Of a DNA stretch of 64,000 bases, positions 1 to 36,979 are shown piece after piece. The first letter of the stretch is position 1; every line of letters starts with the position of its first letter. The notes below the pieces were generated by a model, which made no database searches, was not told the DNA's origin, and was given only the letters and a program-made list of their open reading frames with translations. This stretch comes from Marsupella aquatica (taxonomy: Eukaryota; Plantae; Marchantiophyta), in contig OZ316899.1 in NCBI GenBank assembly GCA_973895155.1, positions 15,527,974 through 15,591,973 on the forward strand. Direction: 5' to 3'. The position numbers and the translations under genes were made by a program.

Positions 1-884
1 AATAAATTAAATACCAAGGGATCAGCATACAAGCCGATCACGAGGGCAGAGCAAATTGAGGCCCTACTAGAAGGCGGAAGAACACGATGGCCTGACCCTC
101 AGGAAGCAGGAATAGATGAGATACACGGGAAGAATCCTGAGCTGAGTCAGGAAGGGGAGCCGACACCGAGCAGAACGGCAAGGGAACAGTCTGTTGATAA
201 CCAGGGAGAAATTAAGTCAACCAACTCGGCTAGTACAGGCGAGATTCCAGTCTATGGAGGTATGAGACTGGAGAGGCCTCGGGGGTCTCACTATATGGAG
301 GACCCCCCCATCACCTGCGACGTTTTCATGCCTAGACCCCCATACTTATTAAGTTGAATTTTTTTTTTCCTCCCTCTTTCTTTCTTCTAAGAGTCTAAAA
401 TCCAAATTGTATTGCCCCTATAATTTGTGAAGTAAAGTGTCACATATCAATAAAAAATGCCTAGAAAGAAAAGATAAGTCTATGTCAGTACCTTGTGAAG
501 TCGTATGTCAGACATGGCACGCCCTGCAACAGCTCTTGCACCTTTGTCGACCTTAAACTTTGATCATTTCAATGCATCATTTATATTGTGTACCTAAAAG
601 GTCATCCCAATATAAACCTTACGTGCATAAGTGGGATGGCCTTTAAGGTCACAACATAAATAATCCATTCCACCCATTGATCACCAATCCCATGCTCCAT
701 CCATACTCCATTTAAAACTTATGTTGAGAGATGTAACATGTGACGGAGGGGAATTGAACCCCTAATTGAGAAATGATCTCAAGTTGCCAATCCGTCACCC
801 CCTATCCTATCCCACTACACCCACTAATATTAACAAAATAAAACATATATACAGACTCTCAAAAACTAAACAGTAGCATGATAT

Positions 885-3800
885 TCATACCATTGTTTGA
901 AGATACTGATCCAAAGCACGTCTATCTATTGGATCCAACACATAGATACGATCCATAACCCCTTCTTTCATGGTTAAACTAACACTAGCAATGACCATTT
1001 CAATATCCATCCATTTCAAATCAGTGGTATCATATCTGAATTCACTTTTGCTCTTACCAATAGGACTATACCAATTTAACAACAGTTCACAAATGTTACC
1101 TGATTGCCCTGCGAGTGGAGTTGGCCTATCCATCAAATCAATTGGTGACCGACAATTGCCCCACCTACTGCCATACTTCTGTCTCATTTGGACAATCCGA
1201 CCCAACCAAAAATATTTCTTACCTGCTGAGATTGCCTCCACCACAACCTTATTCTTTCTTCCCTTTCTTTTTCCAGATCTAGTACTTGGAGCAGGATTAT
1301 CATCAGACTCAAATGCAATTGCACAATCAGTGCCAACATCAACAAAACATGAGTTAGGATTGACTTCTTGCACTTTTCTCTTGCCAGTACTATAGTATAG
1401 CACTTGTTTCACCCTTGTCAACCTATCTTTTGACAAATGCGGATTTCCTACCAACTGGCTTACCAGAGTGGATTTGTAAATCACCTTGCCTTCATAAGTA
1501 ACAGTAGGCACTACCTTGGTACGATTATGCACATTAGTTACAGCATGGACAACTGATCCAAACACATGCCGAACTTCATGACCTAATGTCTCAAGCTCAT
1601 CTGAGGGGTCTACATCAAACTGTATATCATCTCTATGTACATCATCTGAATGCATCTCAGGAACAACAATGGGATCTGGTTCTGTTAACCATGCATCTAT
1701 TCTATTCAGATCATCCTCAGGATCTTCCAATTCATTAAAATCTCCAGTTGGGCGAGGACCTATGTCTGGTGGTTGGTGCTCTACTTGCTCCTCAGAATCA
1801 TTGCAAACAATTGCTTCCTTCAGAACCACCTCTAGTGGCCAGGTCTCACTTTCCACAACCCAAGGACATGTCCACCATCTCTTTCTAGCTGCTGGTAAGG
1901 AACTTCGTGGAGACATCTGCAATTGATGCATAAGATCCTTAGCAGCAACAAAACCTTCTTTAAGGGCTGCAACCACTAATTCATTAGTCTCAATGAGAGA
2001 ATAGTCAAGTAAATTTGGTGCTTCCTCCCCTTCCCCTATAGGATGAATCTTCCCCCATACATGATCTTGTTTCTTATGTGAACGACCTATCTTCAAGCCT
2101 TCTGGTCCATATTCTAGGGCAGCAAGCCGGTTCAGTCCAACAGCACTGTCCAACAGAGAGCCAAAATCATAATTTTGCTCATGGCCACTCATGCCTCCTA
2201 CCTTGCTGAAGAAAATCTCACAACAATCCGAACCTAGCAAGTGGAAGGGAACACCTAGATGTGGGAACTTATCTCGAAAGGCACAAATTAACAGCACAAT
2301 GAAATGACATGACATGTTAACATCATGAAAAGCCTGAATAGACATCATGTCTTTCTCAGTGTGTGCTGCAAATTTCCCACCCACTGAATGGTCACCAAAC
2401 CTCAACCACAATCTCCACAAACGTAGAAAGAATGAAACCTTGGATGCTAACACAATACGGGACCTCAAATCATGAACTGGAGAAAAGAAAATATCTAAGT
2501 AATCTGCACAAATCTCCAAGTACAACTGAGTTCCTAAACTTCGTTCATGTCGTACATCTCTCCTCTCATACATATCTTTCAGACATTGCTGCACTCTTCT
2601 TGCTGCTATTCGTTGTGGACCTGCCCAATTCTGCCGGTCAGTCCTATTCACATCATCCCAAGCCATGCCATGTTCATGAATTGGATAATGATTGTAGACA
2701 TTAGCTACATAAGATAAAGATGCATGTTGATCTCCTAGCACCAGTAAAGAAGACACTCTGTCTAAGGGGTTTATCATCTTTTTCCCATTATGAGGTTGGT
2801 CTTGGTCACCAAAGCCATACAAATCTCCATTTGGTAGAATTGAAACAGAGTATGTCCACCCTTCCCACCCAACTCCGTACCTTGGGTATGATCCATTCTG
2901 CCCTCTATAATCTTCCAGCATCAGCTTTCGGCGACGTGCATCACCATCACTAGCATGTCCAAGCAAAGGGCCTACCATAGCTCTACAATATTCATCCCAA
3001 AAAGCCTTTAACTGGACCCAATGCTCTCGTACCCAAGAAGCTGTGAACTTATTACAAGTTGGAAGTGCACACACAGCCAATTTAGGTAAGGACTCATGCA
3101 GAGGATTCACAATCACAACTCGGGCATACATGCACTTGGGGCATTGTTCAAATGTACTTACAATTTTATCATACCCCTCATCACCTTCACGAACTAGAAT
3201 TTCCAAACCATAGGAGCATACATGTTGCTCTGAAGGTCCACAGAAACCAATGAGAGTATCATACTTTGCCTCCCACCTGAAACACAGACATGCAATTTTT
3301 CAATATCACAGCAATTCCAGCCAAGTGCTACTTGTAAAGTCATTAAAAAAACAATTGGAAAAATGTCCAGTTCCAATTACCTAGGGCGTTCTTTGATCCT
3401 TGTTTCATCCTCAGCAAAGATAATAGGCACATCCCCCTCAATGCCCAATGAGTGCTTTGCAGCAGACAACACTCTAGCAATCTCCTGAAAGGTTTCCTTC
3501 TGTAACCCGGTTCGAAAAGGTGTGAGTTTTGCTCTATCACGTTTTAGGGTCACAAGGCTAGGGGCTGTCAAGTTTCGTGCAAAACAATGAGCAACTTGAC
3601 GGCCCCCAAATTGGAACATAGCCTGAGCAATAGCTCGAGTCCTATTACTGTAACGATTACCTTTTGGCTTCCTGCCTAAATTGCGAGCTACATCCTTCAA
3701 GAAATCCCACAAACCCTCCTTACCACCAAATGCACCATTCCTGTGTCCATTCAAAATACTCCTAAGAAACAATCTCAAATCCTTCCTGTCTGCTGCAACT

Positions 3801-5461
3801 CCTAACAACTCCTCTAGTTTTCGTTTCCTGGTGCTCAAGGCACATACTTTATGAGCCTGCAAAGCTAACAACCAACGCTCTTTTCGTTGCACAGAGTTCA
3901 GGTTGTGCACTTGATCTCTTAACTCTGTGTTGGTCAAATAATCCAAACATATACCACCAGCAATGGTTCGGCTCCCTCTGTGGACTACTGCTTCCGCTTC
4001 CCTGTGCACCCGTCCACTAAAATCATCTTCTAGTGTTATAGAATCACATTCACTACAAGTTAGATTTTCAAATCCTCCTCCATTCTGTGATAACCTCAAG
4101 CAATCCTTGTGTCTAAAACAGCCTGCTATACTCACAACACTCTCTCTACTTGGATGGAAAACATCCAAGCAACAACTTGGCTCACAATGCCATGTAATTC
4201 CCCCAGACTGATCATCTAAAATGCCAGAAATATCATAAGATATACCCTTCCATAATAGTCGAGGCACACCTCTCTCTACCCATAATCCCCAGCAAAGCAA
4301 ACTCAGACCAAGATCAACAGATTCACACACACCTGAACCTGAACCTGAACTGCTGCCTGTCCGGGACCCATCATCTTTAAAGAACTTCAAAATCCTGCTC
4401 TGAGCAGGATGTAGGTCCCTAGAATCAGTCCTCTTTGGCCTGCCCCTCTTCCCAGACCTCAAGGCAAGCTTTTTTGTGTCATGCCTAGTCTCCAATGCAT
4501 CCAAGTGATCTCGACTCACTAAGTGTGTCCTCAAATTGGGCTCCAAGGTAAGCTTCTTGGGGCACAAGTCAGTGTGAAGCATTCCACAGACAGTACAGCG
4601 AACCTTAAACAGGAAAGACCTGTTTACATACTCAGGAGTACTGGGATCAGGAACAATAGAGAATAGTTTGCCATCATCCCCAAGCTCAGCATTCAATCGC
4701 TGAACTATCTCAACACCTACTTTGATGGCGTCTGCATGATCATATTCTGGCTTCTCAGAGATGTCTGCTACCTGAACCAAAGTAGAAGGAATGCCCCTTC
4801 TCCGACAATAGTTATCCTTGTGCTTATTGAAGACCAAGTGTTTGGTCTTAAAATTACTAAAGCAATTGGAGATGGATTTAGGGTTCTGAGAGTTGTCTAC
4901 ATTGCCATAAGTTTCCCTACATTCAAGACACTCCAGATGCCCTCGAACATCTGTCCCCTCATCCCAGGTACGAATTCTCCAATTGTGATCACCATAACCC
5001 TTCTTATGTACCCATTTCTCTAACCTCATCCACTCATCTTTCCATAGCTTTGATGGGACATCTCCCATCAATTGTGACTCAAAAGAAGCCCTTACAGGGG
5101 AGGGTGCTAGTGCTGTTGGCCCCAGTTGTGGTGTCTCAGTATTTGGACCCAATGATGCAGGAGTGCAAGGATGACAGGGTACTGGTGGGATCCTCCCACC
5201 ATCTCCAAGTTCTTGTTGTACAACAATAACTCTTCCATCCAGCTCAGACAGATCAATTAATTTCTCATGTACAAGTTTCACTCGACCAGGAAGTCTCTCA
5301 TCCCAAAAATCAAAGTCAAAGTCTAGAGTAGAGGCAATACGAGCCCTAAAATCATGTAGGGTGTGTCCTTCTTTGAATGACAAAACACAGATTGGTAAAT
5401 CAGCCTTGTCATCCCCAACTTTGCGTATTAATTTAACAGAGTTGGGTTTAGGGGCTGCCAT
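885..5461 (-). CDS. P-element/THAP9-like DDE transposase, two exons (5461-3381, 3276-885), ~1490 aa, apparently intact
   Basis: A GT-AG intron at 3380-3277 joins the 694-aa and 773-aa ORFs in frame, giving IFAEDETRIKERPR|WEAKYDTLIGFCG (cf. P-type FDEMxI...YD..D...GF). Other motifs: DQPHNGKKMINPL (DxxH, cf. DxPHLxKxxRN), DRQN, GSDCCEIFFSKVGG (cf. QDxLExFFSxIR). The N-terminus has two CxxC...H-x5-H zinc-finger-like units and an AT-hook-like KRGRPKR. Confidence 0.8.
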
Positions 5462-5960
5462 TGCAATACAAATCTAGAACATGCATAGCACCATTGCTTT
5501 TGGAGTCGATAACAGAAAGACCTGCACAAATACATTTGAAATACACACAGGGGAAACACATTAGGATCTTCAAGAGATGCAATGACAACATACACATTCT
5601 CATGTCAGTAATGTACATAATGTCAGCATACATTTAACAATAGAAGTGCTAATAGGCCAAAACACTTTATAATGCAATCCATCATACATGCAAATGTATT
5701 CAGTGAAAATCATGATATACCGTTAAAGTTGGATAAAATATCTTTGGAAAAAATATCCTTTTTGCCTGGTTTTCTAACAATTCCCGAGGTTTAGTGCTTT
5801 TGCTCATCAAAATGCAGCACTATTAGTGACCGTAATTATGACAAAATGTCAACACTAATAAAATTGGGTACTACCACCCATGATGCAGCTTAAGTATATG
5901 CCTTGCTCATACCCCACTAAGACGTTGAAACCTAAGTAATAGGTTTGTTCATTATTCAGA

Positions 5961-6710
5961 TCACTGGAGCCATGAAATGTGGTCCCTGATTGGAGTCTTC
6001 AGGTGTGGATCAATAGGATGACGGGGGCAATAAAACATCTGTCGCTGTTGTCCATGTGCTTCATGTTCCCAGATGTCCCTATCATGAGCAAACCCTTTGC
6101 TTTTGATCATCTGGAGACAATCTGTATGCCAGGCATTTGGACATCGTAAACATTGTACCATGTTCTTGACCATCTGACCCTCAAGACTCTGATAACATGT
6201 CACACATGTATGCAGTGGGCAGGACTTTGCAGCAGCTACCAAACACCCAAAGCAATAAAATCGTACACAAAAATGATCAGAGCATTTTTGCACAATTGTA
6301 GGTGACGGTCCCACAGTGCGGCACCCATAACACATGGCCTGGTCCTGGTTACAATTTGGGCAAAACCATGGCTTCCCTCCATGATGGAGGGGAAGGACTA
6401 CACAGGGGCAAGAGTCATTAGGGGCTTCATCTCCAACCACATAATGAAATTGCCTGTGACATGGCCCATCACAAATTACCAACTTCCCACCATGCTCACA
6501 AATTGCACAAACATGAGGGCTGGTTTGTAGAATCTCTTGCTCAGAGAACAAGGGAATACACAATACCTCTTCTAAAGAGGACTGTGTTGCTTTCTTTATG
6601 TTTGAAGTCCTTGTCGGAATGGTTACAACTGAAATCATCACAAAGCACATCACATATGAGAGGGACATGTATGATACTGGGCAATCCATAGAACTTGGAG
6701 AAATCCACAT
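5961..6710 (-). CDS. Tandem PHD-finger protein (EDM2/NSD-like), cargo of the P-like element; 5' end probably spliced
   Basis: CAICEHGGKLVICDGPCHRQFH...WFCPNC, CYGC...C...CVRFYCFGC, CPLHTCVTC...VQCLRCPNAWHTDCL...FYCPRH. This is the pattern of the EDM2/NSD PHD cluster. Confidence 0.8.
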   Translation of the reverse strand: MWISPSSMDCPVSYMSLSYVMCFVMISVVTIPTRTSNIKKATQSSLEEVLCIPLFSEQEILQTSPHVCAICEHGGKLVICDGPCHRQFHYVVGDEAPNDSCPCVVLPLHHGGKPWFCPNCNQDQAMCYGCRTVGPSPTIVQKCSDHFCVRFYCFGCLVAAAKSCPLHTCVTCYQSLEGQMVKNMVQCLRCPNAWHTDCLQMIKSKGFAHDRDIWEHEAHGQQRQMFYCPRHPIDPHLKTPIRDHISWLQ

Positions 6711-6962
6711 TTGAAGTAGTTACAAACCTGCTCCAATGATCTGCAAACCTCCCTCCCAGATGAAGTCAACTACACAGTGCAGCCTGGACACCCACCAACC
6801 AAGACATACATAAATACAATGCCAGCTTGCGAAACTTTGCCACATAATGGGAATGAAAATTATTCTCATATATCATGGATGGTACAATTGCAGCCTTGCA
6901 AACAAAGGCCTAGTCATCCCGGACCTCAAGTCATGAACAACGCATCCATGTACTATCAGGGA

Positions 6963-7361
6963 CTACAATGTCAAGCATCCATGGGCTGTAACCTTAGCTT
7001 GACCTGGAATACTATTTGGGGCTACAATATCAAGCTCAGTTATATGTGGAATACTATCTAGGACTACAATGTCAAGCGTGTCCGGGATGACAATCTTGCG
7101 TAAAAGACACTCATTTTGAGGCCAAATGGTTGGCCTTATACAAGAGCACCTCCAGCGACGTGTGACAACTTTGTCATGCTTTCCCATGTATGTCCTAGTA
7201 ACAAGTCTTCCACGCATTTTCAAGCAAAAGCAATGGAACCATTCAAAATTGCCATCACCAACCCTGCACTTCACACAAGATTCGCACCAGCAGCATTCAT
7301 CTGGATGCTGCAAAAGGAGCTTCTCATAATTCACTTCTAATGTAATGCCCAATTTAGCCAT
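6963..7361 (-). CDS. Possible additional degenerate PHD finger (ING-like EWFH motif), perhaps an upstream exon of the PHD gene
   Basis: CCWCESCVKC...EWFHCFCL...RWRCSC. Confidence 0.4.
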   Translation of the reverse strand: MAKLGITLEVNYEKLLLQHPDECCWCESCVKCRVGDGNFEWFHCFCLKMRGRLVTRTYMGKHDKVVTRRWRCSCIRPTIWPQNECLLRKIVIPDTLDIVVLDSIPHITELDIVAPNSIPGQAKVTAHGCLTL

Positions 7362-7630
7362 GGCACTATTTTTTTTACTCGGTGAATGGCCAGGCGATCA
7401 GACGTGCAATGACAGGCAACTTACAATTCACTAGGTACAGTATGTGCTCTAGCAAACTGCTTCACCGCAAGTGCTGGTGCTCACAGCTGCAAGCACTGAT
7501 TGCTTTTGCAACCTGTGAACAAAATTAAAACCACCAGTTCAATAAGTTTCAAATGCTGCAAGCGCTGAAGACAACCAATTGGCCATGATGCATGTTACGA
7601 CAGCAATAAACAAATAATTGGGCTCAACAG

Positions 7631-7679
7631 ACCTGAATAGCTAACCTGAATAGCTAACCTGAATAGCTAACCTAAATAG
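7631..7679 (+). repeat. 13-bp tandem repeat (ACCTGAATAGCTA), about 3.8 copies
   Basis: Directly visible. Confidence 0.9.
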
Positions 7680-9924
7680 GATCATGGACCTCTCATAGCT
7701 ATGGTGTCCTTCCTACATTACACATTGGTCTAATTTATGCAGTGTTTCACTATGATTGTGTTCCATAGAAGAGCATCCAATCTGGCTGACCATTGGAGGA
7801 AGCTTGGGCTGGGTCATAGCTACAGCAATTACTCCTCTGCAAATGCTGTTTGTTGGTAACACATGTTTACTCATCAGTAGACGAATGAAGCATCTGAGGT
7901 TTTTGAAACTTGTGCTCTGATGAGGGAGTGAGTGACGTGGGAGCCATGATAATCATAGATTCAGTGCAAAAGCAAAATCCATGCTCAAAGGCAAACGTGG
8001 CAAAATCGGGTATATGTTCTTCACTGCCAAAGCTTCTGTTTGTGCAGCAAAATCCATAAAAGGAATGAAGGAACAAGGGGGAACTCCAGACTCAAGAGCC
8101 TCAATTGCTGCATTGTGGAAACGCGTTGCGTGGGAGAAGTCGTTGGCTTGTAGAAGAAGTAAAAGTGTGCTGGTGAAGGATTTTGTGGTCGGGGTGCATC
8201 ATAAGGTTGACACAGAGAAGAGAGAGGTGTGGAGAGGCAAGGAGAGGAGCAGAAAAGTAGGAAAGGCCGTGTAAGGCAGTCGATAAAAAGCGAGTTAGGT
8301 TTGGAGTGTCCTCTCGACAGCAAAGGATTTCGTGTGTGCTGAATTTGTTGCTGGTCCAAATTCCAGGAGCCAGTCAGTAACGGAATAGTGGAATTCTGGG
8401 AATAGCAGATGCTCATCAGTCGTAGCATCTGCGTATGTTTTGTCATCTGGGGAGAATTCAATGAGGTTTGTGGTTTTGGGGAAGGCTGCTGTGAAGAGTT
8501 TGTGTTCGTGTGGAGGGATTGGTGGCAAATTTTGATTGGTGCAGGGCAGAAGTAGCAAGAGATGGGAGAGTGACAGGATGTGGAGATCGGTTGGCCATAA
8601 CCAAGGCAGCGCCAATGACGACGAGGAGCGCAAAGAGGCAAAGGCGGAGGAAGATGAGGAGGTAGAAGAACCAGACCACCAAATAGAGAATTTACTACAT
8701 CAAAGACACTACAGAGATGAGCGCATCAATGGGCTACAACATATTCAAGTGCGGATCCCTTTTTTGCAATCAACTCACGGAAATAGAGGATTTACACTTA
8801 CTTGCCCCACCACAAATCATTCTTGGAAGTGTCTTCCTTGACAACACGTTTGTCCTTTGGAGATCGGCCAGTTTTCGCCCCGGAAAGCGTGGCAAGAGCC
8901 CCTATCGAGGTGATGTACAAACTCTTCTCGTGCTTCAGAGAGAAGAGTACAAAGAGAAACGGCAAAAACTTTAGTCATTATAATTGAATCAGACCATGGG
9001 AACAGACAGAGATAGCTTCCAAACGCTCAACTAAATCCTGAAGCAACAACCATGACGATCGCAACCCGTATGCGGCGAATGGACATAGCTATGCTAGGAC
9101 AGGACACAACGAGAGGGCACCGATCACCGTATCTAGAGAGCTGATTTATTCGTCTCCTACAAATCATAAGTCGCACAGTAGAGTTTCTACGCATCTTAAC
9201 GTAGGAACGAAGGTAAAAGGTAGTTTTTTTACCAGGCATCCTTGGAAATGAAAGCAACTTTTGAACTATCGACATGATGTGACAGAGTACAAGAAAGGCC
9301 TTCAGTGCATGTGAAACAGAAATGCTAGAACTACTCATGAGTTCACATGAAACACAATTCCCCGGTCTAACTACTTTCAAATCTCGATGGGCAAATCTAA
9401 CGCATATGACTTGCGCAAGCAATGTCTATGGAACACATCGGCTACGACCGCTACCAGATAAGGTGTGCCATGCGTGGTACATATGGGCTTCAAACAGTAG
9501 CAAGCAAGCATGATTGAGCGTCAAACAATAGCAAGCAAGCAAGCACGATCGTCAAAGCAGGAAGCGCCCACCTCCCGGTTGAGCAACACAGCAATGCTGC
9601 AGCAGCCCTGGCAATCCTGTTTGAGCAAGCAACAATGCAACACTCTCGCTCCCGTTTCAGCAAGCTAGTAGCTCCCGTTTCAGCAAGGTAGCAACTTCCG
9701 TTTCAACAAGCAGCAACACCACACTCCCGGCACCCACCTCTTGTTTGAGCAGCTGCAATGCAGCACTTGCAACAGCCACACTCCCGCCCGCACTCCTTGT
9801 TTGAGCAACAACACAGCAGTCACATAAACTTTCCTATCATTTCAGCAAGCAGGAACGTAGCACACTCCCTCAACCAAGACAATAGCGCACCTATACACTC
9901 CAACCTTGCAGCGCAACACTCTCG

Positions 9925-10470
9925 CCTGATCCTACATTCCCGGGTTCACTCCAAGCAGCAGCGCAACCGAGAAGTCTCGCTCTCCCCTTTACTCTAAGCA
10001 GCAGCGCAGCTGAGAAGTCTCGCTCTCCCATTCACTCTAAGCAGCAGTGCAACTGAGAAGTCTCGCTCTCCCCTTCACTCTAAGCAGCAGCGCAGCCAAG
10101 AACGACCTTGATCCTTCACTCCCAAGTAGCAGCGCGCAGTCGAGAACTTTGGGTTGATCCTTCACTTCAAGCAGCAACAGCAGCAACGCAGCCGAGAGCG
10201 CAACACTCTCGCTCTCCCCTTCACTCCAAGGCACAGCCAACAACTCTCGCTCGATCCTTCGCTCTAAGCAGCAGTGCAGCCAATAAATGTTGCTTGATCC
10301 TTCACTCCAAGCAGCCGTAGCAGCAGCGCAGGCGAGACCACAACACTCTCGCTCGATCCTTCTTCACTCACAGCCGAGAGCACAACACTCTCGCTCGATC
10401 CTTCTTCACTCGCATCCGAGGTCACAACACTCTCTCTCGATCCTTCTTTGCTCCAAGTAGCAGCACACTC
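9925..10470 (+). repeat. Degenerate ~40-bp tandem repeats (CCTTCACTCYAAGCAGCAGCGCAGCCGAGAAGTCTCGCTC-like) near the right end of the P-like element
   Basis: Roughly a dozen recognisable iterations. Confidence 0.8.
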
Positions 10471-11130
10471 GTTTAGACCCCCGTTTACACCATTTGCTGC
10501 AAGGTACAAACAAAAGAGTCTCTCATCCCAAACAACGGGTGGGGCCAAAGGGATATTGGAGGGAAACGACACGGGAGGAGACTGACAAGGGCGGCCAATT
10601 GAGGGAAACTAGACATGTTAAACGGAACAATTTCAAACTTAATCCCACTCAAACCCTAAACGTGAGTTCCCAAAAAACCAGACCCACTTAAATCATTCTC
10701 AAATTAGAATCCATGTTAAAATAAACATGACTTAGGAAAATATATTGAGAATGTTATGTGTGCCATGTGTACCAATGATATAGTGACACGTGTAATTTAC
10801 ATAGTCCGACACAAAGACCCCCTAACTTCCTTGTATGCCTTCCATCTACATAGTCAAAAATATTAATATCCCTATTATTCTTACAAGTTGTCCAACATAT
10901 AAAATTGACCCTATTGTTCTTACACAAATCTTCTTAAGTCTTCCGAGAAACCCAATTAACGGACCCTATACTTAGTCGCACGTGATATGAGATTTTCGCG
11001 AAGTGAGACCCCCGAGGGAGAGGCTGGAAGCCGAGCTGGACCCAAATTTGAAGAAGCAGATTAATATGATCCAAGCACGACAATACCAAAAGCTCAACTT
11101 AGGAGAAGGAAGGGAACTGAACTTGGGACA

Positions 11131-14100
11131 TGTGGTGCGTCCCATGGCTCCCTAAACCCAAGAAACCCCCCAGCTCATGCCGATTCCCGCGGGTTTCGCG
11201 CTTGGCGAGGCCGTTTCCGCGGCTTAGCGGCATGGGACGCTGCTAACCTTCTACTACTACTATTAACATTTTACACACATATACTTGACAGATCCTTCAT
11301 CGGGTCATGAGATACGTAGCCGGCCTAATCTAGGCCTTCCCCTGTCTTCCCTTCCGTCTTGTTAGGTATGTTTGGATTCCGCCGCCGGAATGATCCCCAA
11401 TAGGCTTGGTTAAGCCGCTAAGACCTCTCTCAGCTCGACACATCCAACTCTCACTCCCCTGCTTACTTTCCTTCCTTCTGGTTGATGTGGGCACTCTTCA
11501 CACAAGTTAATGCGACACACAAATAGCAAAATGACTCATTCTGACTGAGTCATACCATGCACTTGCCATACAAACAGTACATCTCATACACAAGCTCTGC
11601 GAACTAAGCCGTGAGGCCAACTCTATTCAACTCTTAGGCATGAGGAAACATGAATATACACAAGGGTCACTGTATGACTAACCGAGAGCTTCTCGTACTA
11701 CTTGATCCCAGCCCGGCTGGTGCAAACTAAAAACTTGCTAAAGAAGAGGCCCTGAGCTCCCCGCTACCCAGGTACTTATCCTGGTAGTGGATCCACCATT
11801 CTTTGCATCGTAAGCCTAATCTACTTAACAGTAATCTACTTGACCGAATCTACCTATGTACAGCAAGGCAGGAGCACAAGTGTTGCTCCTACCAGTGGGA
11901 CCGCAATCCCACTAAGCTAAGTGTCAGGGCCGCTCCTGGTCCTGATCCTAATCCTAAACTTGGAGATCCGCGCCCGCCCTACCCACTCACGCCTCCTCCC
12001 TCCACGTCCGCCCTCCCTAAAAGGAACGGCGCCCTTGCACCGTCACGACACCGGTGGTGGATCCTTAATGGACGCCCCCAACGCTTCCTCCTCAGCCACT
12101 GCCATAGGCTCATTCCCTGACAGATTACCTGCCCTTGACTGAGTCAACTCTCCATCGGCCTGACTGGGTCCACCATCGGCGTCGGCATCGGCTCGGGAAT
12201 CGGTTACGGCCTCAGCCTCGGCTACGGTCTCCCCGGTCTGCTCAAGAGGCGGATCTGGAATACCGGCCTCGTTACTGAGTAGTTCGGCTTGGGCCGCACC
12301 ACCCCCACCTGTGATGATAGCGGGATCTATTGCTGTATTCATGCCGGAGGATGGTGCTGGTTCTACCTCTTTGGTCACCACGGCTTGTGGAGTCGGATTA
12401 CTCCTTGACCCTGAAGGTTTCCGCTTTTTCTTCTTTTCTGGTTCGGCCGCTGGTCCCTTCCCCTTCCCACTTACTTCCGGCACTGGTGCAGTTGGCGCGG
12501 CTTTTTCTTCGGCCATTACCACTCCTGGTAACTTGGTTGCCCCAATTGGAGTTGGGCCTGATGAAGACAAGCACTTAAATACTGCGGCTTGTTTCTTCAG
12601 CCGCTCCGTTTGGTTGTCGGCCCGCCGCTGGAGGTTCTCCATCTTCCTCGTGATTTCCTCCAACTCCTCCTGGGTCTCATCCAGGTCCTTGCGCGCCTCC
12701 TCTAGTTCCTTCTGGGCTTCCTCCCGTTCTTGTTTCAAGGTAGTCCTCTCCTCCCGGGTTGCTCTTAGCTCCTTGTCGAGCTCTACAATGATGACAGACT
12801 CCATCTGGTTCATCTTGGCGTAAGTCTGTTCGAGCATCTCGTCCTTCTCCCTTAGGTCGGCCTTGAAGCTGGCCGTCAGGGACGCAAGCTCCTGCTGCAA
12901 CGCCATAATCCCTTGATAGGATTTCCCTAACTCAGCCTCCTTCTGCTCAAGGGCTCCGCGGATTTTCTTGAGCTCCCCCTTCAACGCCCATTCCTTTCTT
13001 TGGGTCTCCGCCATGGCCCGGCTGTTGGCTGTTATGTGGGCCTCCTCTGTATTCTTCAGCTCTTGCTTCCACTTCTCCCTCTCTTTGATTGTGTCGGCCA
13101 ACTCTCCCTGCGTCTGAGTCAGTTTATCCTTGATATTCTGATTATCAGCCTGCGCGGTGTCCAACTGCCCCTGCATGATGTTCAGCTCATGTCGTTTAAT
13201 CCGCAGTTCATCTTGGGCTTTCTTGGTCGCCCTTAGATCTTCAATCTCGGCTTCCATCCTCCTAAGCCGCCGAATGACCTCGTCCTTCTTGCTTCTCTCT
13301 AAAGCCACCGCTTCTTCTAATTGGTGCTTCTCCAACTGCTCCCTATGGAAAAAGGGTCCTACCTCCAACTCCTCTCCAAAGATGCCGAGCGCAAGTTCCC
13401 CACACATCTCACCATACTCCATGGCTCTATTCTTAGCGTAGGTGGAGTAAGTAGAAGTGATCGGCATCGCCCATCGCGGCCTCTGCTCCCAAGCCGACCT
13501 GAGGATCTCTTCAATCGTGGCTAGAGGTTTGCTTCCTTTTTCGGCTAGCCGCCTGATGTCCTCCGGCCAATCTCCTCCTGGTAAATCCTTTTCCCTAGCC
13601 AGGGCTGCCTCCTCTTCCTGCCTGATTCGCTCCTGAAATTCCTGCACCGTCTGTTTTATGCCGTCGAAGCTCGGGGGAGCAACATCTGGTGGGGGAGACT
13701 CAGGGCTACTCTACTGGTTGGGGTCCCCTCGCACTACCCTTGGAAGTGTGGGGACAAACCGGCCACAGGTCCTTACTCCTGGAACGTGATGGTCCGACCC
13801 ATAGCCGGAATTATCATGGCTGCAGTCCTCCACTGCCTCCTCTACCTCTTGGACGTCCGGCTTCTCCCTCTCCTCTTCGTCGGTAGGAGCTTCAGGCAAT
13901 TCTGCCTCCGGCAATTACCTTGGGAGTAAGATAGAAATCCTTCCCATATATCCTCGTGCAATTGGTCTCGAGTTCCCATGACCCCACGAATTCTAATAGG
14001 TCTGACTCCGGTACCTCCGGCTTCAGCCATGGTAATCTTACAAAGGCCTCTAAGCCGGATCCGGCCATGAAGCCTTGGTACTTCTTGGTCTGCATGGCCG

Positions 14101-17851: not shown

Positions 17852-19614
17852 TGTGATGCCTAACCAGGAATCACTAGGCCGGTTAAGTGGGAAAACGGAA
17901 GTGTACCCTAGAAATACCTTAGTATAGTTACAAGAATGAGGAAAATATAAACAATTAAGGATGACTATGGAACCCGGGCCGAGGCCGGAAGTAAGGACGT
18001 CGGGGGAGAGAATAAAATTAGGGTTAGGGTGCACTAAGTGTCGGCAGCTAGGGGTAACCAACGATAGGGAAGACCAGAGGAGGAGAGGGGTAAGGACAGC
18101 TCGCGAGGAATGGTGGCTCATTTGCAAGCACAAATTGGGCAGACGACTACGGGAGGTCAACTACTGCCAGCTGCTTAGACAAGCACTCTAGGCGGGAGCA
18201 GATACCAACAAACGACTCAAGGAGGGTATGAGCAACGTCAATCAAGCGACACATTTTTGGGGATGCCTGTTCAAACGGGAAACTGAGTACATTGGGACTT
18301 ACAAGGACGAAGAATCAGAGAGAGCAGCTTGAGAATGGCAGGAGCTCGCTCGACTGTGGGAGCTGCAGAAATCTGTCTTCTTAGGAGGAGAATTCATCAA
18401 GGCCAAGTTCTTGTGGACTCCTACTGCCAATCAGCTTGACGACCTTCTGTTTTGCAAAAACAAGATCGTCGGCATTCGGGACGCCATCAACCGTTGCAAC
18501 GACATACACTGGGAGTTGAAGGGTAGCACAGAGGGGTGGACAAAGGCAACCGTGCTAGGAGAAACATCCACAACAACCGAGATGAAGAGGAAAGGAAACA
18601 ACAACGAAGAGGCCACCCCAGCAAAAAGAACGAGGTCGGCGGCACCAAGGAAGCCAGCAGAGCAGGGAAGCAGGAGGCAGGCGGAAGCCGAAGAGGAGGA
18701 GGTCGATCCCATCAATGCCATTCCAACAAAGGATGACACCTGGAAAGGCTGGGCGGCGACCCTACCAGAAGAAGTGCAACTGCATTTTGCACGGGAGGAG
18801 GATGCATGCTTTACGGCCATGCAGACCAAGAAGTACCAGGGCTTCATGGCCGGATCCGGCTTGGAAGCCTTCGTAAAATTACCATGGCTGAAGCCGGAGG
18901 TGCCGGATTCAGACTTATTAGAATTCGTGGGATCATGGGAGCCCGAGACCAATTCCACAAGGGTGTATGGGAAGGATTTCTATCTCACTCCCCGGGTGAT
19001 TGCCGAAGTGTTTGGCTTGCCGATGGGCAATAAGACCAAAGTAGATACCAGGAAGACCTTGCCAGACAAAGAGTTTCGGTCGTTTCCAGGGCCATCAACA
19101 AAGAATGGCTTCTTTCGAAACACCTGCACCAACCCACACATAGGAGAAATGATTGATTTCTTGCGGGTGACCATGCATTGTAACTTGCCAAGGGCAAAGA
19201 TCGGCAAGGCACAGGTCTATCTGGCGGAGAGGCCAGACCCAAGCCGAGACTACAATGGGTACCTCCTCACCCAACTAAAGAAGATCTTGAAGGAGGAATA
19301 GCTGGTGATCGGCATGGGAAGCATGTCCCGGCTTGGCTATCACATGCCGTTGTTGTGCCGGTATGCCAGAAGTCAGATCTTTGCCCCAGTACTTCCCCTG
19401 CAGGCGAGGGCACCAGAGGAAGTCCCGGAGCAGAGGCCGGAACCAGAGGAGCCCAACCAGCCCGCCAGTCCTACGATCGAGCAGATGTTTCAGCCAAGAA
19501 AAGAAGACTTGCCGATGCAGCAATCAGGCATGCAGAATCTGCTGAAATTGCTGGAAAAGGAGAAATCAGCCTATTCATTAAAAGTGTATTTTCTTTTGTT
19601 CACAAATCAGTCCT

Positions 19615-19700
19615 GAAATGTACACTTTTATGTCCCCAAATGTACACTTTACGAAGCCCAAATGTACACTTTTTGATACCTAAATGTACACTTTATAGGC
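19615..19700 (+). repeat. Left subterminal repeats AAATGTACACTTT (about 4 copies)
   Basis: Directly visible; same motif at the right end. Confidence 0.85.
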
Positions 19701-32585: not shown

Positions 32586-35580
32586 AATCAAATAATAATA
32601 CACTTTTAATGAATAGGCTGATAGAAGAGAACGGCACCGGCAACGACAACGGCACCGGCATTGGTACAGGACACTGCCCCAGAGGTCGGCCTAAGCCGAC
32701 TCAGGAGGGAAAACCCCTTTACCGGAGCCAAGGTGAGAAGGAGGCCAGAACACGAGTCGGGAGTTCGAATGTATGTGGGAGCCTCCAGCCCCGAATCAGA
32801 GGCAGAGCAACCTAAGGCTCCTGCCCACGGAAAGCAGAGGGAGAAGACAGCCTGGAACCCAGAGGAGGAACCAGGGCCCGTGATCTATGAGGCCGTTTTT
32901 ACGGCGGGACCAGGAGAACAGAGGGGGAAGCCGGGAGTCCAAGCAGTGGAGGAGGCGATGGAGGACTACAGCAATGATAACTCCGGCTATGGGTCAGATC
33001 ATCATGTACCAGGAGTAAGAACCTATGGCCGCTTTATCCCCACGCTTCCAAGAGTAGTTCGAGGGGATCCCACCCAACAGAGCAGCCCCGAGTCCCCCCC
33101 ACCAGATGTCGCTCCCCCAAGCTTTGACGGCATAAAGCAGATGGCACAAGAGTTTCAGGAGCGACTCAGAGAGGAAGAGAAGGCAGCCCTGGATAGGGAG
33201 AAAGAGGAGGAGATTGGCCGGAGGACATCAGGCGGCTTGCCGAAAAAAGAAGCAACCCTCTTTCCACCATAGAAGAAATCCGCAGGGCGGCTTGGGAACA
33301 GAGGCCGAGGTGGTTGATGCCGATGACTTCTACTTACTCCACCTATGCTAAAGATAGAGCCATGGAGTACGGGGAGATGTATGGGGAACTTGCGCTCAGC
33401 ATCTTTGGGGAGGAGTTGGAGCAGGGACCCTTTTTCCAGAGGGAGATATTGGAGAAGCACCAATTAGAAGAAGCGATGGCTTTGGAGAGAAGCAAGAAGG
33501 ACAAGGTCATAGGGCGGCTTAGGGAGATGGAAGCCGAGGTGGAAGACCTAAAGGCGGCCAAGAAAGCCCAAGATGAGCTACGGATTAAACGGCATGAGCT
33601 AAACATCGTGCAGGGGCAGTTGGATACCGCGTAGTCTAATAATCAGATTATCAAGGATAAACTGACTCAGACCCAAGGAGAGTTGGCCGAGGCGGTCAAA
33701 GAAAGGGAGAAGTGGAAACGAGAGCTGAGAGACGCAGAGGAGGCCCACATAGCAGCAAACAACCGGGCCATGGCGGAGACTCAGAGAAGGGAGAGGGCGT
33801 TGAAGGAGGAACTCGAGGATATCCGCGGAGCCCTAGAGCAGAAGGAGGCCGAGTTAGGGAAATCCTATCAAGGGATTATTATGCTACAACAGGAGCTTGC
33901 TTCCCTGACGGCCAGCTTCAAGGCCGACCTCTGTGAGAAAGACGACCAGCTCAACCAGACTTATGCCAAGATGAATAAAATGGAGTCTGATGTCGTGACA
34001 GAGCTCGACGAGGAGCTAAGAGCAACCCAGGAGGAGAGGGCTACCTTAAAGAAAGAGTTGGAAGAAGCCCAGAAGGAGCTGAAGGAGGCAAGGAAGGACC
34101 TGGACGAAACCCAGGAGGAGTTGGAAGAAACCACAAGGAAGATGGAGAACTTACAGCGGCGGGCCGACAACCAAACAGAGCGGCTGAAGAAACAGACAGC
34201 AGTATTTAAGTGCTTAGCTTCATCTGTTCCAACTCCAATTGTGGGAACCCCGTTACCAGGAGTGGTACTGGCAGAAGGACAAGCCGAGACACACGCCCTG
34301 ATGTCGGAGGTAAGTGGCAAAGGGAAGGGACCAGCTGCCAAAACAGGGAAGAAGAAGAAGCGGAAACCTTCTGGGTCTGGGAGTTATACGGCTCCTCCAG
34401 CCTTTGTCACCAAGGAGGTAAACCCGACACCAACTTCCGGCATGGTCACGACAATGGATCCACCTGTCAAGGAAGGTGGGGATGGCAAGACTGAGGCCGG
34501 GACAACTATTGATGAAGCCGTGGTAGAAAATCCACCACTAGAGCCAGCCGAGGAAACCATAGCCGGGGAGGCCGTGGCCGATACTGATGCCGAAGCCGAG
34601 GGTGGACCCAGTCAGGCCGATGAAGAGTTGACTTGGTCCGGGGCAGGTAATTTGTTAGAGGAAGGACCGACGGCAGTGGCTACGGGGGAAGCGTTGGGGG
34701 CGTCCATTGAGGATCCACCACCGGTGTCGTGACGGTGCAAGGGCGTCGTTCCTTTTAGGAAGGGCGGACGTGGAGGTAGGAGGCGTGAGTGGGTAGGGCG
34801 GGCTCGGATCTCCAAGTTTAGGCTGAGGATCAGGACCAGGAGACGGCCCTGACACTTAGATTAGTGGGATTGCGGATCCACTAGTAGGAGCAACACTTGT
34901 GCTCCTGCCTCACTGTACTTAGGTAGATTACAGTTAGGTAGATTATAGGTAGGATAGATTAAGCTTACGCTGCTAAGAATTGGCGGATCCACTTCCAAGA
35001 TAAGTACCTGGGCAGCGAGGAGTCCAGGGCCTCTTTCTTAGCAAGTTTTTAGTTGCACAGCAGGGCTGGGATCAAGTAGTAAGAGAAGCTCTCGGTTAGT
35101 TATACAGTGACCCTTGTGTATATTCATGTTTCCTCATGCCTAAGAGCTAAATAGAGTTGGCCTCACGGCTTAGTTTGCAGAACTTGTGTATGAGATGTAC
35201 TGTTTGTATGGCAAGTGCATGGTATAACTCAGTCAGAATGAGTCATTTTGCTATTTGTGTGTCGTATTAACTTGTGTGAAGAGTGCCCACATCAACTAAT
35301 AGATGAAGGGAAGTAAGCAAGGGAGTGAGAGTTGGATGTGTCGAGCTGAGAGAGGTCTTAGCGGCTTAACCAAGCCAATTGGGGATCATTCCGGCGGCGG
35401 AATCCAAATATACCTAAAGAAAAGGAGGGGAATACAAGGAAGGCCTAGATTAGGCCGGCTACGTATCTCATGACCCGATGAAGGATCTGTCCAGTATATG
35501 TGTGTAAAATGTTAATAGTAGTAGTAGAAGGAAGTTAGCAGCGTCCCATGCCGCTAAGCCGCGGAAATGGCCTCGCCGAG

Positions 35581-36979
35581 GACAAAACCTGCCTCAAGAA
35601 GAGCATCAAGCGCTGCAACTCAATGATTCCCACATCCTGCTTCGGTAACTGAGACACCCTTCTCTTGAACTCCCTTAGGAGCTCTTGCGGCCCCTTCAGC
35701 TTCTTGTTCTTGTCATTCACCCAATCCAAGAAGGTAGCCTGCGTGACCCGATCAGCATCCTCCGCTTGGAACTCCTCTTTCATCTTCTGGTCGAAGTCAT
35801 CCCAACCCTCAGCTGACTCAACGATGGTCTGCACCATCAAACTCAACTCGTTCTCAACCAGCACCATGAACTCTTTCACGGCTGTCCCTTCGTCCAACTT
35901 GTAGATAGCTGCTTTTGTCAAGTAAGACTTAAGGTAGCTTGTCACATTTCTCCCATCGAACTGCCCATTCTCTTTTAGAACCTCTTGGAGACACCAAGTA
36001 GTTCTATTCGCTTCCCTGTTCGCCCTTTCCGACTCAAGCTCTTCCTTCCTTATGGTTCTCATCATCGACATGACGATGCTCGATATCGAATCGACTTCGT
36101 CATAGTCACCCATCTCATCCAATCGCCCCAAGGAATCCCCAGTACGGTTGCCAATGTCGCGAGGACTTAAAGTTAGGGGCTCCTTGGGCAAACTACACAT
36201 TTCTGGCTGCGATCGGGAAGGTGACAAGCACTTTTTGGAGCGAACTCTCACTCCTTTATATTTTTTACTTTTCTCACAAAGGTTACAATAGGTGCCCTCG
36301 AGTAAGCTTGCCCGCAAGAGTCTGGTAGCTGGCCCTACGGCGGGCCGCTACCTCTAACTTGTCGGGTAGAACTCCTCGAATGACTAACTACTCAAAATCT
36401 GATGGAAAAACTATCCTCCTTAGCTCACAAAAACCAAAAACTCAACTAGCTACTCCACTGGTCTAAAACAGCTCGCATGGAACTCGGGCCTGGACCAACG
36501 ATGCTCCAAACTTGAGAAATCCTCTCCTGGATCGATAAGACTCCAAACTCGAGAAATCCCCGCCTGGATCAACGAGACTCTAGACTCGAGAAATTCCCCG
36601 CCTGGATCGAAAACTCCCCACCTGGATGGAAAACTCACTCGGAACTCCAAAACCGCCACACAATAGTCGAGTTCCGCAGAACAGAGCGAAACTCACAGAA
36701 TGCAACTCAACACATCTCAGTAGACAACCGCCAACCTCAATGAGCCGAGACTCAAGTCTTAAGTAGCATCAGGAACCCAACCATCCAGCCTGAGCCAACT
36801 GCCAGCAGCAAGGCTCATCCAAACTCCAAGCCTGGTGACGATGAGTCACCCAATCACCAAACCTCAATCCATCCAACCAAGCAGCCCCTCCGAGTCAGCA
36901 TGCACGCAATCCAACCTGGAGGCCTTGCCCATCATCCCCTATAAAAGCCATTCCTGAGCCAAAATCTTTTGGCACGACA
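35581..36979 (-). mobile_element. Family-3 gypsy copy A: 5' LTR (36155-36979), PBS and truncated gag
   Basis: LTR TGTCGTGCC...CTCGCGACA. PBS TGGCAACCGTACTGGGGA (36153-36136). gag MGDYDEV...GQFDGRNVTSYLKSY. Confidence 0.88.

Follow-up and report, generated by a model that had tools for sequence, protein, structure and literature searches.

P elements hold a classic place in animal genetics, and GTP serves as a cofactor in Drosophila P. To our knowledge, the transposons usually listed for land plants are only hAT, MULE, CACTA, PIF, Tc1/mariner, Sola, and Ginger. A 2025 survey that applied Pfam profiles, including P, to 1007 plant genomes reported active elements with terminal inverted repeats (TIRs) in seven superfamilies, none of which was P (PMC12973397), and our own literature search brought up no report of P-type elements from land plants. 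Here, we analyzed a 64,000-nucleotide stretch of the liverwort Marsupella aquatica (GCA_973895155.1, contig OZ316899.1, positions 15,527,974 to 15,591,973), referred to below as the window, and an element that occupies its positions 278 to 11016. We consider it very probable that this element is a DNA transposon of the cut-and-paste, autonomous type, complete in structure, which belongs to a divergent P-superfamily branch without THAP and resides in a liverwort-type genome. The original prediction, made from the letters of the window, had proposed an intact P-element-like transposon; its ends, its target site duplication (TSD), and its gene were all found, and the interpretation is supported by the fold of a homologue model and by the TSDs of relatives.

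Ends, target site duplication, and transposase gene

The boundaries of the element are set by its TIRs, as follows.

278..11016, minus strand (that of the transposase gene): whole element, 10,739 bp
278-292, plus strand: TIR CTCGGGGGTCTCACT, at the end adjoining the 3' end of the transposase gene
11002-11016, minus strand: TIR, exact reverse complement of CTCGGGGGTCTCACT on the forward strand, at the end upstream of the genes
270-277, no strand: left copy of the TSD GGAGAGGC, directly outside the left TIR
11017-11024, no strand: right copy of the TSD GGAGAGGC, directly outside the right TIR

The two TIRs are complementary at 15/15 positions and the two flanking copies of the TSD are identical at 8/8, just as had been predicted. 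We parsed the ends as a 15-bp TIR plus an 8-bp TSD because a 16-bp TIR would break the duplication. When the window was searched for CTCGGGGGTCTCACT with up to 2 mismatches, only 2 matches were found, and both are the ends of the element. Since 0.10 matches are expected by chance and 0/100 shuffles of the window gave 2 or more, we rejected a chance pairing of TIRs. The right flank of the element (11189-11624) is 93% identical to an inverted stretch about 24 kb away (35153-35592), and the transposon therefore adjoins or sits inside another repeat.

On its minus strand, the element contains two long open reading frames (ORFs) of 694 and 773 aa, which form one transposase gene with an intron between them.

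5461..3381, minus strand: transposase exon A, residues 1-693 and two bases of codon 694
3380..3277, minus strand: intron of 104 nt, GT-AG, phase 2, starting GTAATT and ending TTTCAG
3276..888, with the stop at 887-885, minus strand: transposase exon B, from the third base of codon 694 to residue 1490
3409-3407, minus strand: codon of the catalytic candidate D685
2948-2946, minus strand: codon of the catalytic candidate D804
2801-2790, minus strand: codons of D853/H856, the DxxH motif
2219-2217, minus strand: codon of the catalytic candidate E1047

The spliced gene adds up to 693 codons, one split codon, and 796 codons, giving a 4.47-kb frame of 1490 codons with 0 internal stops, so that the predicted stop-free product of about 1490 aa holds with a single 104-nt GT-AG intron. 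Splicing in phase rebuilds the family-wide motif W....D.L.GFCG....H.C, which is seen in unspliced relatives, and the frame of one relative (L001) is broken at the same point as the window intron. The window protein carries the motifs A-E-D685-E-T, S-D804-G-D806, D853-Q-P-H856, and C-C-E1047-I-F-F-S, all of which fall on invariant or near-invariant columns of our family alignments; they include the P-type DE, DxxH, and ExFFS motifs named at the outset. Among 32 members with 20-25% mutual identity, the invariant columns are exactly D-E, D-G, D..H...K, and E, which correspond in the window to D685, D804, D853/H856, and E1047. Judged from this conservation, D685, D804, and E1047 are candidates for an Asp/Asp/Glu catalytic triad.

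The two exons differ in content. Exon A encodes, in this order, a small N-terminal domain, a pair of fingers with an AT-hook, and a beta domain rich in Cys and His; next come a long helix (residues 508-544), an HTH-like helical region, and D685. Exon B, whose domains were assigned from the model of a homologue described below, supplies the RNase H strands that follow beta1 and an all-alpha insertion domain; after the catalytic helix come an acidic linker and a beta-barrel at the C-terminus.

Relatives, their ends, and a subterminal motif

A word search returned 66 relatives of the transposase, the best of them 65% identical; their sources are two liverworts, Riccia sorocarpa and R. fluitans, the fern Adiantum nelumboides, and many ENA, Logan, and JGI contigs. 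A search with exon A matched proteins of Calypogeia fissa and Riccia. When a profile was run against 1.84 billion representatives, 6039 proteins were found at E <= 0.001 and 1023 at E <= 1e-30, where the 6039 are representatives at 50% identity in public data. Several paralogous copies of the family are present per genome. Among the 66 relatives from the first search and 10 clusters that were looked up, every name is hypothetical protein except for one Riccia 'Transposase' (UniRef), and only two of these entries have a precomputed Pfam domain, a Tudor domain in both cases. Thus, this is a large, unannotated transposase family that standard domain models miss.

Complete elements were found around two of the Riccia sorocarpa genes. 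In the first (L004), the transposase gene lies between CTCGGGGATGTCACT ends at 8695-8709 and 17858-17872 and is flanked by a perfect 8-bp TSD, GATGTCTT. In the second (L006), the ends are CTCAGGGATGTCACT at 7509 and CTCATGGATGTCACT at 19697, and the TSD, TGAGAAAC, is again a perfect 8 bp. The TSD is therefore 8 bp long in 3/3 complete elements when the window is included, within the 7-8 bp of the P superfamily, and checking these relatives bears out the predicted length. The Riccia TIR matches the window TIR at 13/15 positions. A third Riccia locus (L005) has one TIR-like left end, for which no partner was found within the locus. In Calypogeia fissa (L007), the exact 15-mer of the window closes one element and opens a second; the coding regions of L007 and the window share only about 67% DNA identity, yet the TIR is identical. 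The CTCGG termini, which the original prediction had set apart from termini starting with CA, are common to all three liverwort genomes.

The second family element of L007 (19584-21506) starts 3.2 kb past the end of the first, carries an identical TIR and subterminal sequence of the 5'-side type, and runs beyond the locus examined.

These loci also bear on whether the transposase could be a domesticated host gene, with the TIR/TSD pair a coincidence. Conserved long ORFs that recur in several genomes and are annotated only as hypothetical would suit such a gene, but the TIR occurs just twice in 64 kb, exactly flanking the gene and together with a perfect 8-bp TSD. The same ends bound the Calypogeia relatives, several paralogous copies exist per genome, and relatives at unrelated Riccia loci are surrounded by the same ends with different 8-bp TSDs. 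On the strength of these observations we rejected domestication, to which we give hardly any credence.

Inside the TIRs, a subterminal block, CAYSTRCGA, is found 33-43 bp from the end in 8/8 termini aligned from the three genomes, and the spacer in front of it varies. In the window, the pattern has only 2 occurrences, one per element end.

312-320, plus strand: subterminal motif CACCTGCGA, 35-43 bp from the end
10976-10984, minus strand (inverted): subterminal motif CACGTGCGA, 33-41 bp from the other end

The two ends can be told apart by their sequence, since the end on the 3' side of the gene reads CACCTGCGACGTTTT and the end on the 5' side reads CACGTGCGAC.AAGTATAGGG, in the window and Calypogeia alike. 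P elements have a transposase-binding motif set inside the TIR (PMC7776569). Because a subterminal block constrained in this way is to be expected of such a site, we consider CAYSTRCGA a likely candidate for the binding site of the transposase.

One of the Riccia sorocarpa elements hints at how copies may move. In the L004 element, the stretch upstream of the catalytic exon is just about 1.3 kb long, and most of the N-terminal DNA-binding coding region is absent. Since this region is mostly gone, yet the ends and TSD are perfect, L004 is likely a deletion derivative that was moved in trans. Separately, a palindrome of 25-30 bp, GGGAGCGGGACGTTCAGTCCCGCTCCC, is present in L004 in at least a dozen copies, at 12850-13520 and 8985-9060, none of which is present in the window element.

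Fold of the catalytic core and the terminal modules

Since the first catalytic Asp is encoded in exon A and the remaining residues in exon B, we used an unspliced relative, P0005 (865 aa), as the query for fold comparison. P0005 is 42% identical to exon B of the window end to end, and its AF2 model, built from a 35-sequence alignment, has a pLDDT of 78.6, with a core above 90. With Foldseek, the only strong matches to the model were two Drosophila P-element transposase strand-transfer complexes, headed by 6p5a_A (E 6e-9, TM 0.62 on the target) and followed by RAG1 (1.7e-3) and Hermes (8.6e-3). With VIA, the model matched 6pe2_A/6p5a_A with a Z of 24.4 and an rmsd of 4.4 over 365-372 residues, covering P residues 174-569, well ahead of Transib (Z 10.5), RAG1 (9.3 or less), and Hermes (8.3). 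In the structural comparison that the original prediction had called for, P transposase is thus the best match to the homologue model.

The matched part of the P fold comprises the end of the HTH domain, the split RNase H, and the all-alpha insertion domain before the catalytic helix. In the model, D-E-T is carried by the first strand, S-D-G-D closes the fourth, and the family Glu sits past a 160-residue all-alpha insertion, on the helix next to it; these positions therefore fit a DDE site. Moreover, the insertion domain of P0005 aligns structurally with that of P transposase. A model of window exon A (pLDDT 66) places residues 560-692 colinear with P residues 128-236, although weakly (Z 4.9), and this alignment sets D685 level with P D230. 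Just upstream, the long helix at 508-544 is coiled-coil-like and stands in place of the P leucine zipper. The domain order of P, as described in PMC7776569, parallels that of the window family.

Several results weigh against the assignment to P. The transposase exons of the window have no Pfam family match at E up to 1, and neither phmmer searches of each exon against PDB nor searches with profiles A1 and A5 gave a real match there, the P chain included. Because HMMER profiles miss the P chain, the link to P consists of structure and a few weak matches. Membership at the level of sequence would depend only on sub-threshold Pfam matches in relatives, namely the P-specific PF21787 at E 2.6e-4 in the Adiantum relative, below the cut-off, and the P-specific PF12017 in 2/32 distant members, at best 6.4e-5; these two are the only transposase models that the relatives match. 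The catalytic fold was modeled on the homologue P0005 rather than on the joined protein of the window, and since Kolobok, Novosib, Zisupton, and MULE have no solved structure, P is the best match among solved folds, with a closer unsolved relative conceivable. The TIR, 15 bp starting CTCGG, also differs from that of Drosophila P, 31 bp starting CATG. Finally, no THAP domain was matched by Pfam in the window or 58 relatives, and the N-terminal model gave no THAP fold match; on the other hand, THAP is reported as animal-restricted (PMC7776569), and it is therefore not expected of non-animal P members.

We also asked whether the family could belong to another superfamily, such as hAT, Novosib, or Zisupton, with their 8-bp TSDs, or Kolobok, so that its likeness to P would merely reflect a shared architecture of RNase H and insertion domain. 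The absence of a significant sequence match between the window protein and P models is consistent with this, as is the lack of solved Kolobok, Novosib, and Zisupton structures for comparison. The hAT TSD is also 8 bp, and the two fingers look like the BED or C2H2-type ones that are common in hAT transposases. However, the Z of 24.4 to P against 8.3 to Hermes argues for P, as do the Pfam scans of the window and 58 relatives, from which BED and the hAT dimerization domain (PF05699) are absent, and the restriction of the relatives' transposase matches to PF21787 and PF12017. We rejected hAT on the Hermes comparison and the missing PF05699. Kolobok duplicates TTAA, and it was rejected since the three TSDs, at 8 bp each, are unrelated to TTAA. 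Overall, we regard membership in another superfamily as improbable and retain the P assignment.

The N-terminus of the transposase contains two finger-like motifs, C178-x2-C181...H208-x5-H214 and C289-x2-C292...H313-x5-H319, and an AT-hook, KRGRPKR, at residues 338-344. The small N-terminal domain, both CxxC...NL..H.....H motifs, the AT-hook, and the Cys/His-rich beta domain are kept in relatives, so the proposed THAP-less N-terminus with two C2H2-like fingers and an AT-hook proves to be real and shared with relatives. The N-terminal model (pLDDT 66) had no Foldseek match at E <= 0.001. Its best match across VIA was to ribosome hibernation factors (Z 7.2, residues 123-228), and because the best matches lie within the noise band, we gave the finger region no fold name.

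At the other end of the protein, the homologue model shows, over its last 150 residues, a borderline resemblance to chromo-barrels and to BAH domains of plants (Z 7.2-7.6, rmsd about 3, 83-87 residues). We treat the idea of a BAH or chromo-barrel-like beta-barrel, which comes from the model, as a lead only. A search of the ESM Atlas with the C-terminal 238 aa returned unnamed eukaryotic clusters only. Elsewhere in the family, distant members (P0053, P0054, and members of alignment A5) vary in their C-terminal module, which is a PTM/DIR17-type Tudor domain (PF21743, E 1e-9 to 2e-8) or, in single members, a SAP or C1 domain. These differing C-terminal modules suggest that the family has swapped modules that tether the transposase to chromatin or DNA.

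Probable companion gene, possible activity, and comparison with known systems

Besides the transposase gene, the element contains the following features.

5961..6710, minus strand: PHD-finger ORF, upstream of the transposase and in the same orientation; PF23004 PHDvar_NSD, E 6.8e-8
6963..7361, minus strand: Cys-rich ORF upstream of the PHD ORF, no Pfam match
9945..10450, no strand: tandem repeats of 42-43 bp in the 5' subterminal non-coding part, about 3-4 units in each array, 75-91% matches

When five ORFs of the window were scanned with Pfam, PHD matches were found in 5961-6710 alone. A homologue of this ORF is present in the Calypogeia locus (L007, 8379-8690, plus strand) at the same position and in the same orientation (34% identity, E 6e-11), and no counterpart was seen in the Riccia elements. 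Because the homologue is kept in place and orientation in Calypogeia, the PHD ORF probably belongs to a companion gene that is distinct from the transposase gene and goes with this lineage, rather than being a chance capture. We do not read it as an upstream exon of the transposase, because the transposase start (MA.S...) is conserved in relatives. In addition, 3.8 repeats of a 13-bp unit, ACCTGAATAGCTA, lie further inside the element (7631-7679).

Based on these features, we propose how the element would transpose. The N-terminal fingers and AT-hook would bind the subterminal motif, the helix at 508-544 would dimerize the protein like the P leucine zipper, and the HTH would contact the TIR. 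Both ends would then be cut by the DDE site and joined to phosphates of the target that lie 8 bp from each other, and repair after joining would produce the 8-bp TSD. More speculatively, the C-terminal beta-barrel and the PHD companion may couple the element to chromatin.

Both TIRs and both subterminal motifs are in place in the window element, together with a TSD, an open gene of full length whose intron is clean, and every invariant residue. Because every part that is needed appears to be present, either a recent insertion or ongoing selection is indicated, and it is plausible from the sequence that this copy is young and possibly active. On the other hand, the intact-looking copy could be an immobile relic, silenced or subtly defective, that testifies to past activity only. 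The 64-kb window provided no second copy, empty site, or transcript evidence, and the repeat at 35153-35592 misses the insertion point. An exact look-up of the window ORF gave no identical entry, the 15-bp TIR and 8-bp TSD are too short for the insertion to be dated, and the TIR identity across species is a constrained trait of the family rather than a sign of a new copy. What speaks against a relic is that a 4.47-kb frame, a clean intron, the invariant residues, perfect TIRs and TSD, and both motifs are unlikely to last long without selection or recent insertion. We consider a relic a serious possibility, though one that falls somewhat short of being probable.

The fullest version of our interpretation is that this is an active, autonomous, two-gene P transposon of liverworts, whose zinc fingers read the subterminal motif and whose barrel and PHD protein steer or protect insertion through histone marks. 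We hold this version only tentatively and think it rather unlikely as a whole. If it were true, P-type transposition would be ancient and still living in land plants, where domain-based surveys have overlooked it. Pfam-based surveys of the kind cited above miss this family, whose sequence similarity to P lies below Pfam thresholds. An undamaged copy with defined ends is a substrate for transposition assays in bryophytes and a possible tagging tool. With it, the possible ancestral nature of GTP dependence and of P-type strand-transfer geometry can be examined, and a DNA transposon with chromatin-reader-like modules becomes open to study.

Among other known systems, the hAT elements (Ac, Hermes) share with the window element an 8-bp TSD, short TIRs, an RNase H with an alpha-helical insertion, a C/DxxH motif, and DNA binding by zinc fingers. 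The window element differs from them in its fold (Hermes Z 8.3, rmsd 7.7) and in having no Pfam match to the hAT C-terminal dimerization domain or BED, and its termini are not of the YARNG type of hAT ends. Kolobok is reportedly related to P in its motif pattern (Yuan and Wessler 2011, as cited in PMC5751038), and some Kolobok members carry THAP. Like the window family, Kolobok is without any Pfam model, and we compared the two by description rather than by sequence. Novosib, from the green alga Chlamydomonas and hence in the green lineage, and Zisupton/KDZ have 8-bp TSDs. The RNase H assignment of Novosib is uncertain (PMC5751038).

The closest resemblance is to Drosophila P and vertebrate THAP9. 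All are cut-and-paste elements with TIRs and an 8-bp TSD, and the protein has the same order of a DNA-binding N-terminus, a long helix, an HTH, a split RNase H, and a C-terminal domain. The all-alpha insertion domain lies between beta5 and the catalytic helix in each, and the DE first motif, the DxxH after the second Asp, and the E..FS catalytic helix are the same. A binding-type motif inside the TIR is documented in P (PMC7776569) and is proposed for the window element. In contrast to P, the window transposase has fingers and an AT-hook in place of THAP, is 1490 aa rather than 751 aa long with an extra C-terminal beta-barrel, has sequence similarity below Pfam thresholds, and is accompanied by a putative PHD-finger companion gene. 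To these known systems, our analysis adds an undamaged element with defined ends, conservation of ends and motif across species, three concordant 8-bp TSDs, and a conserved PHD gene that is its probable companion.

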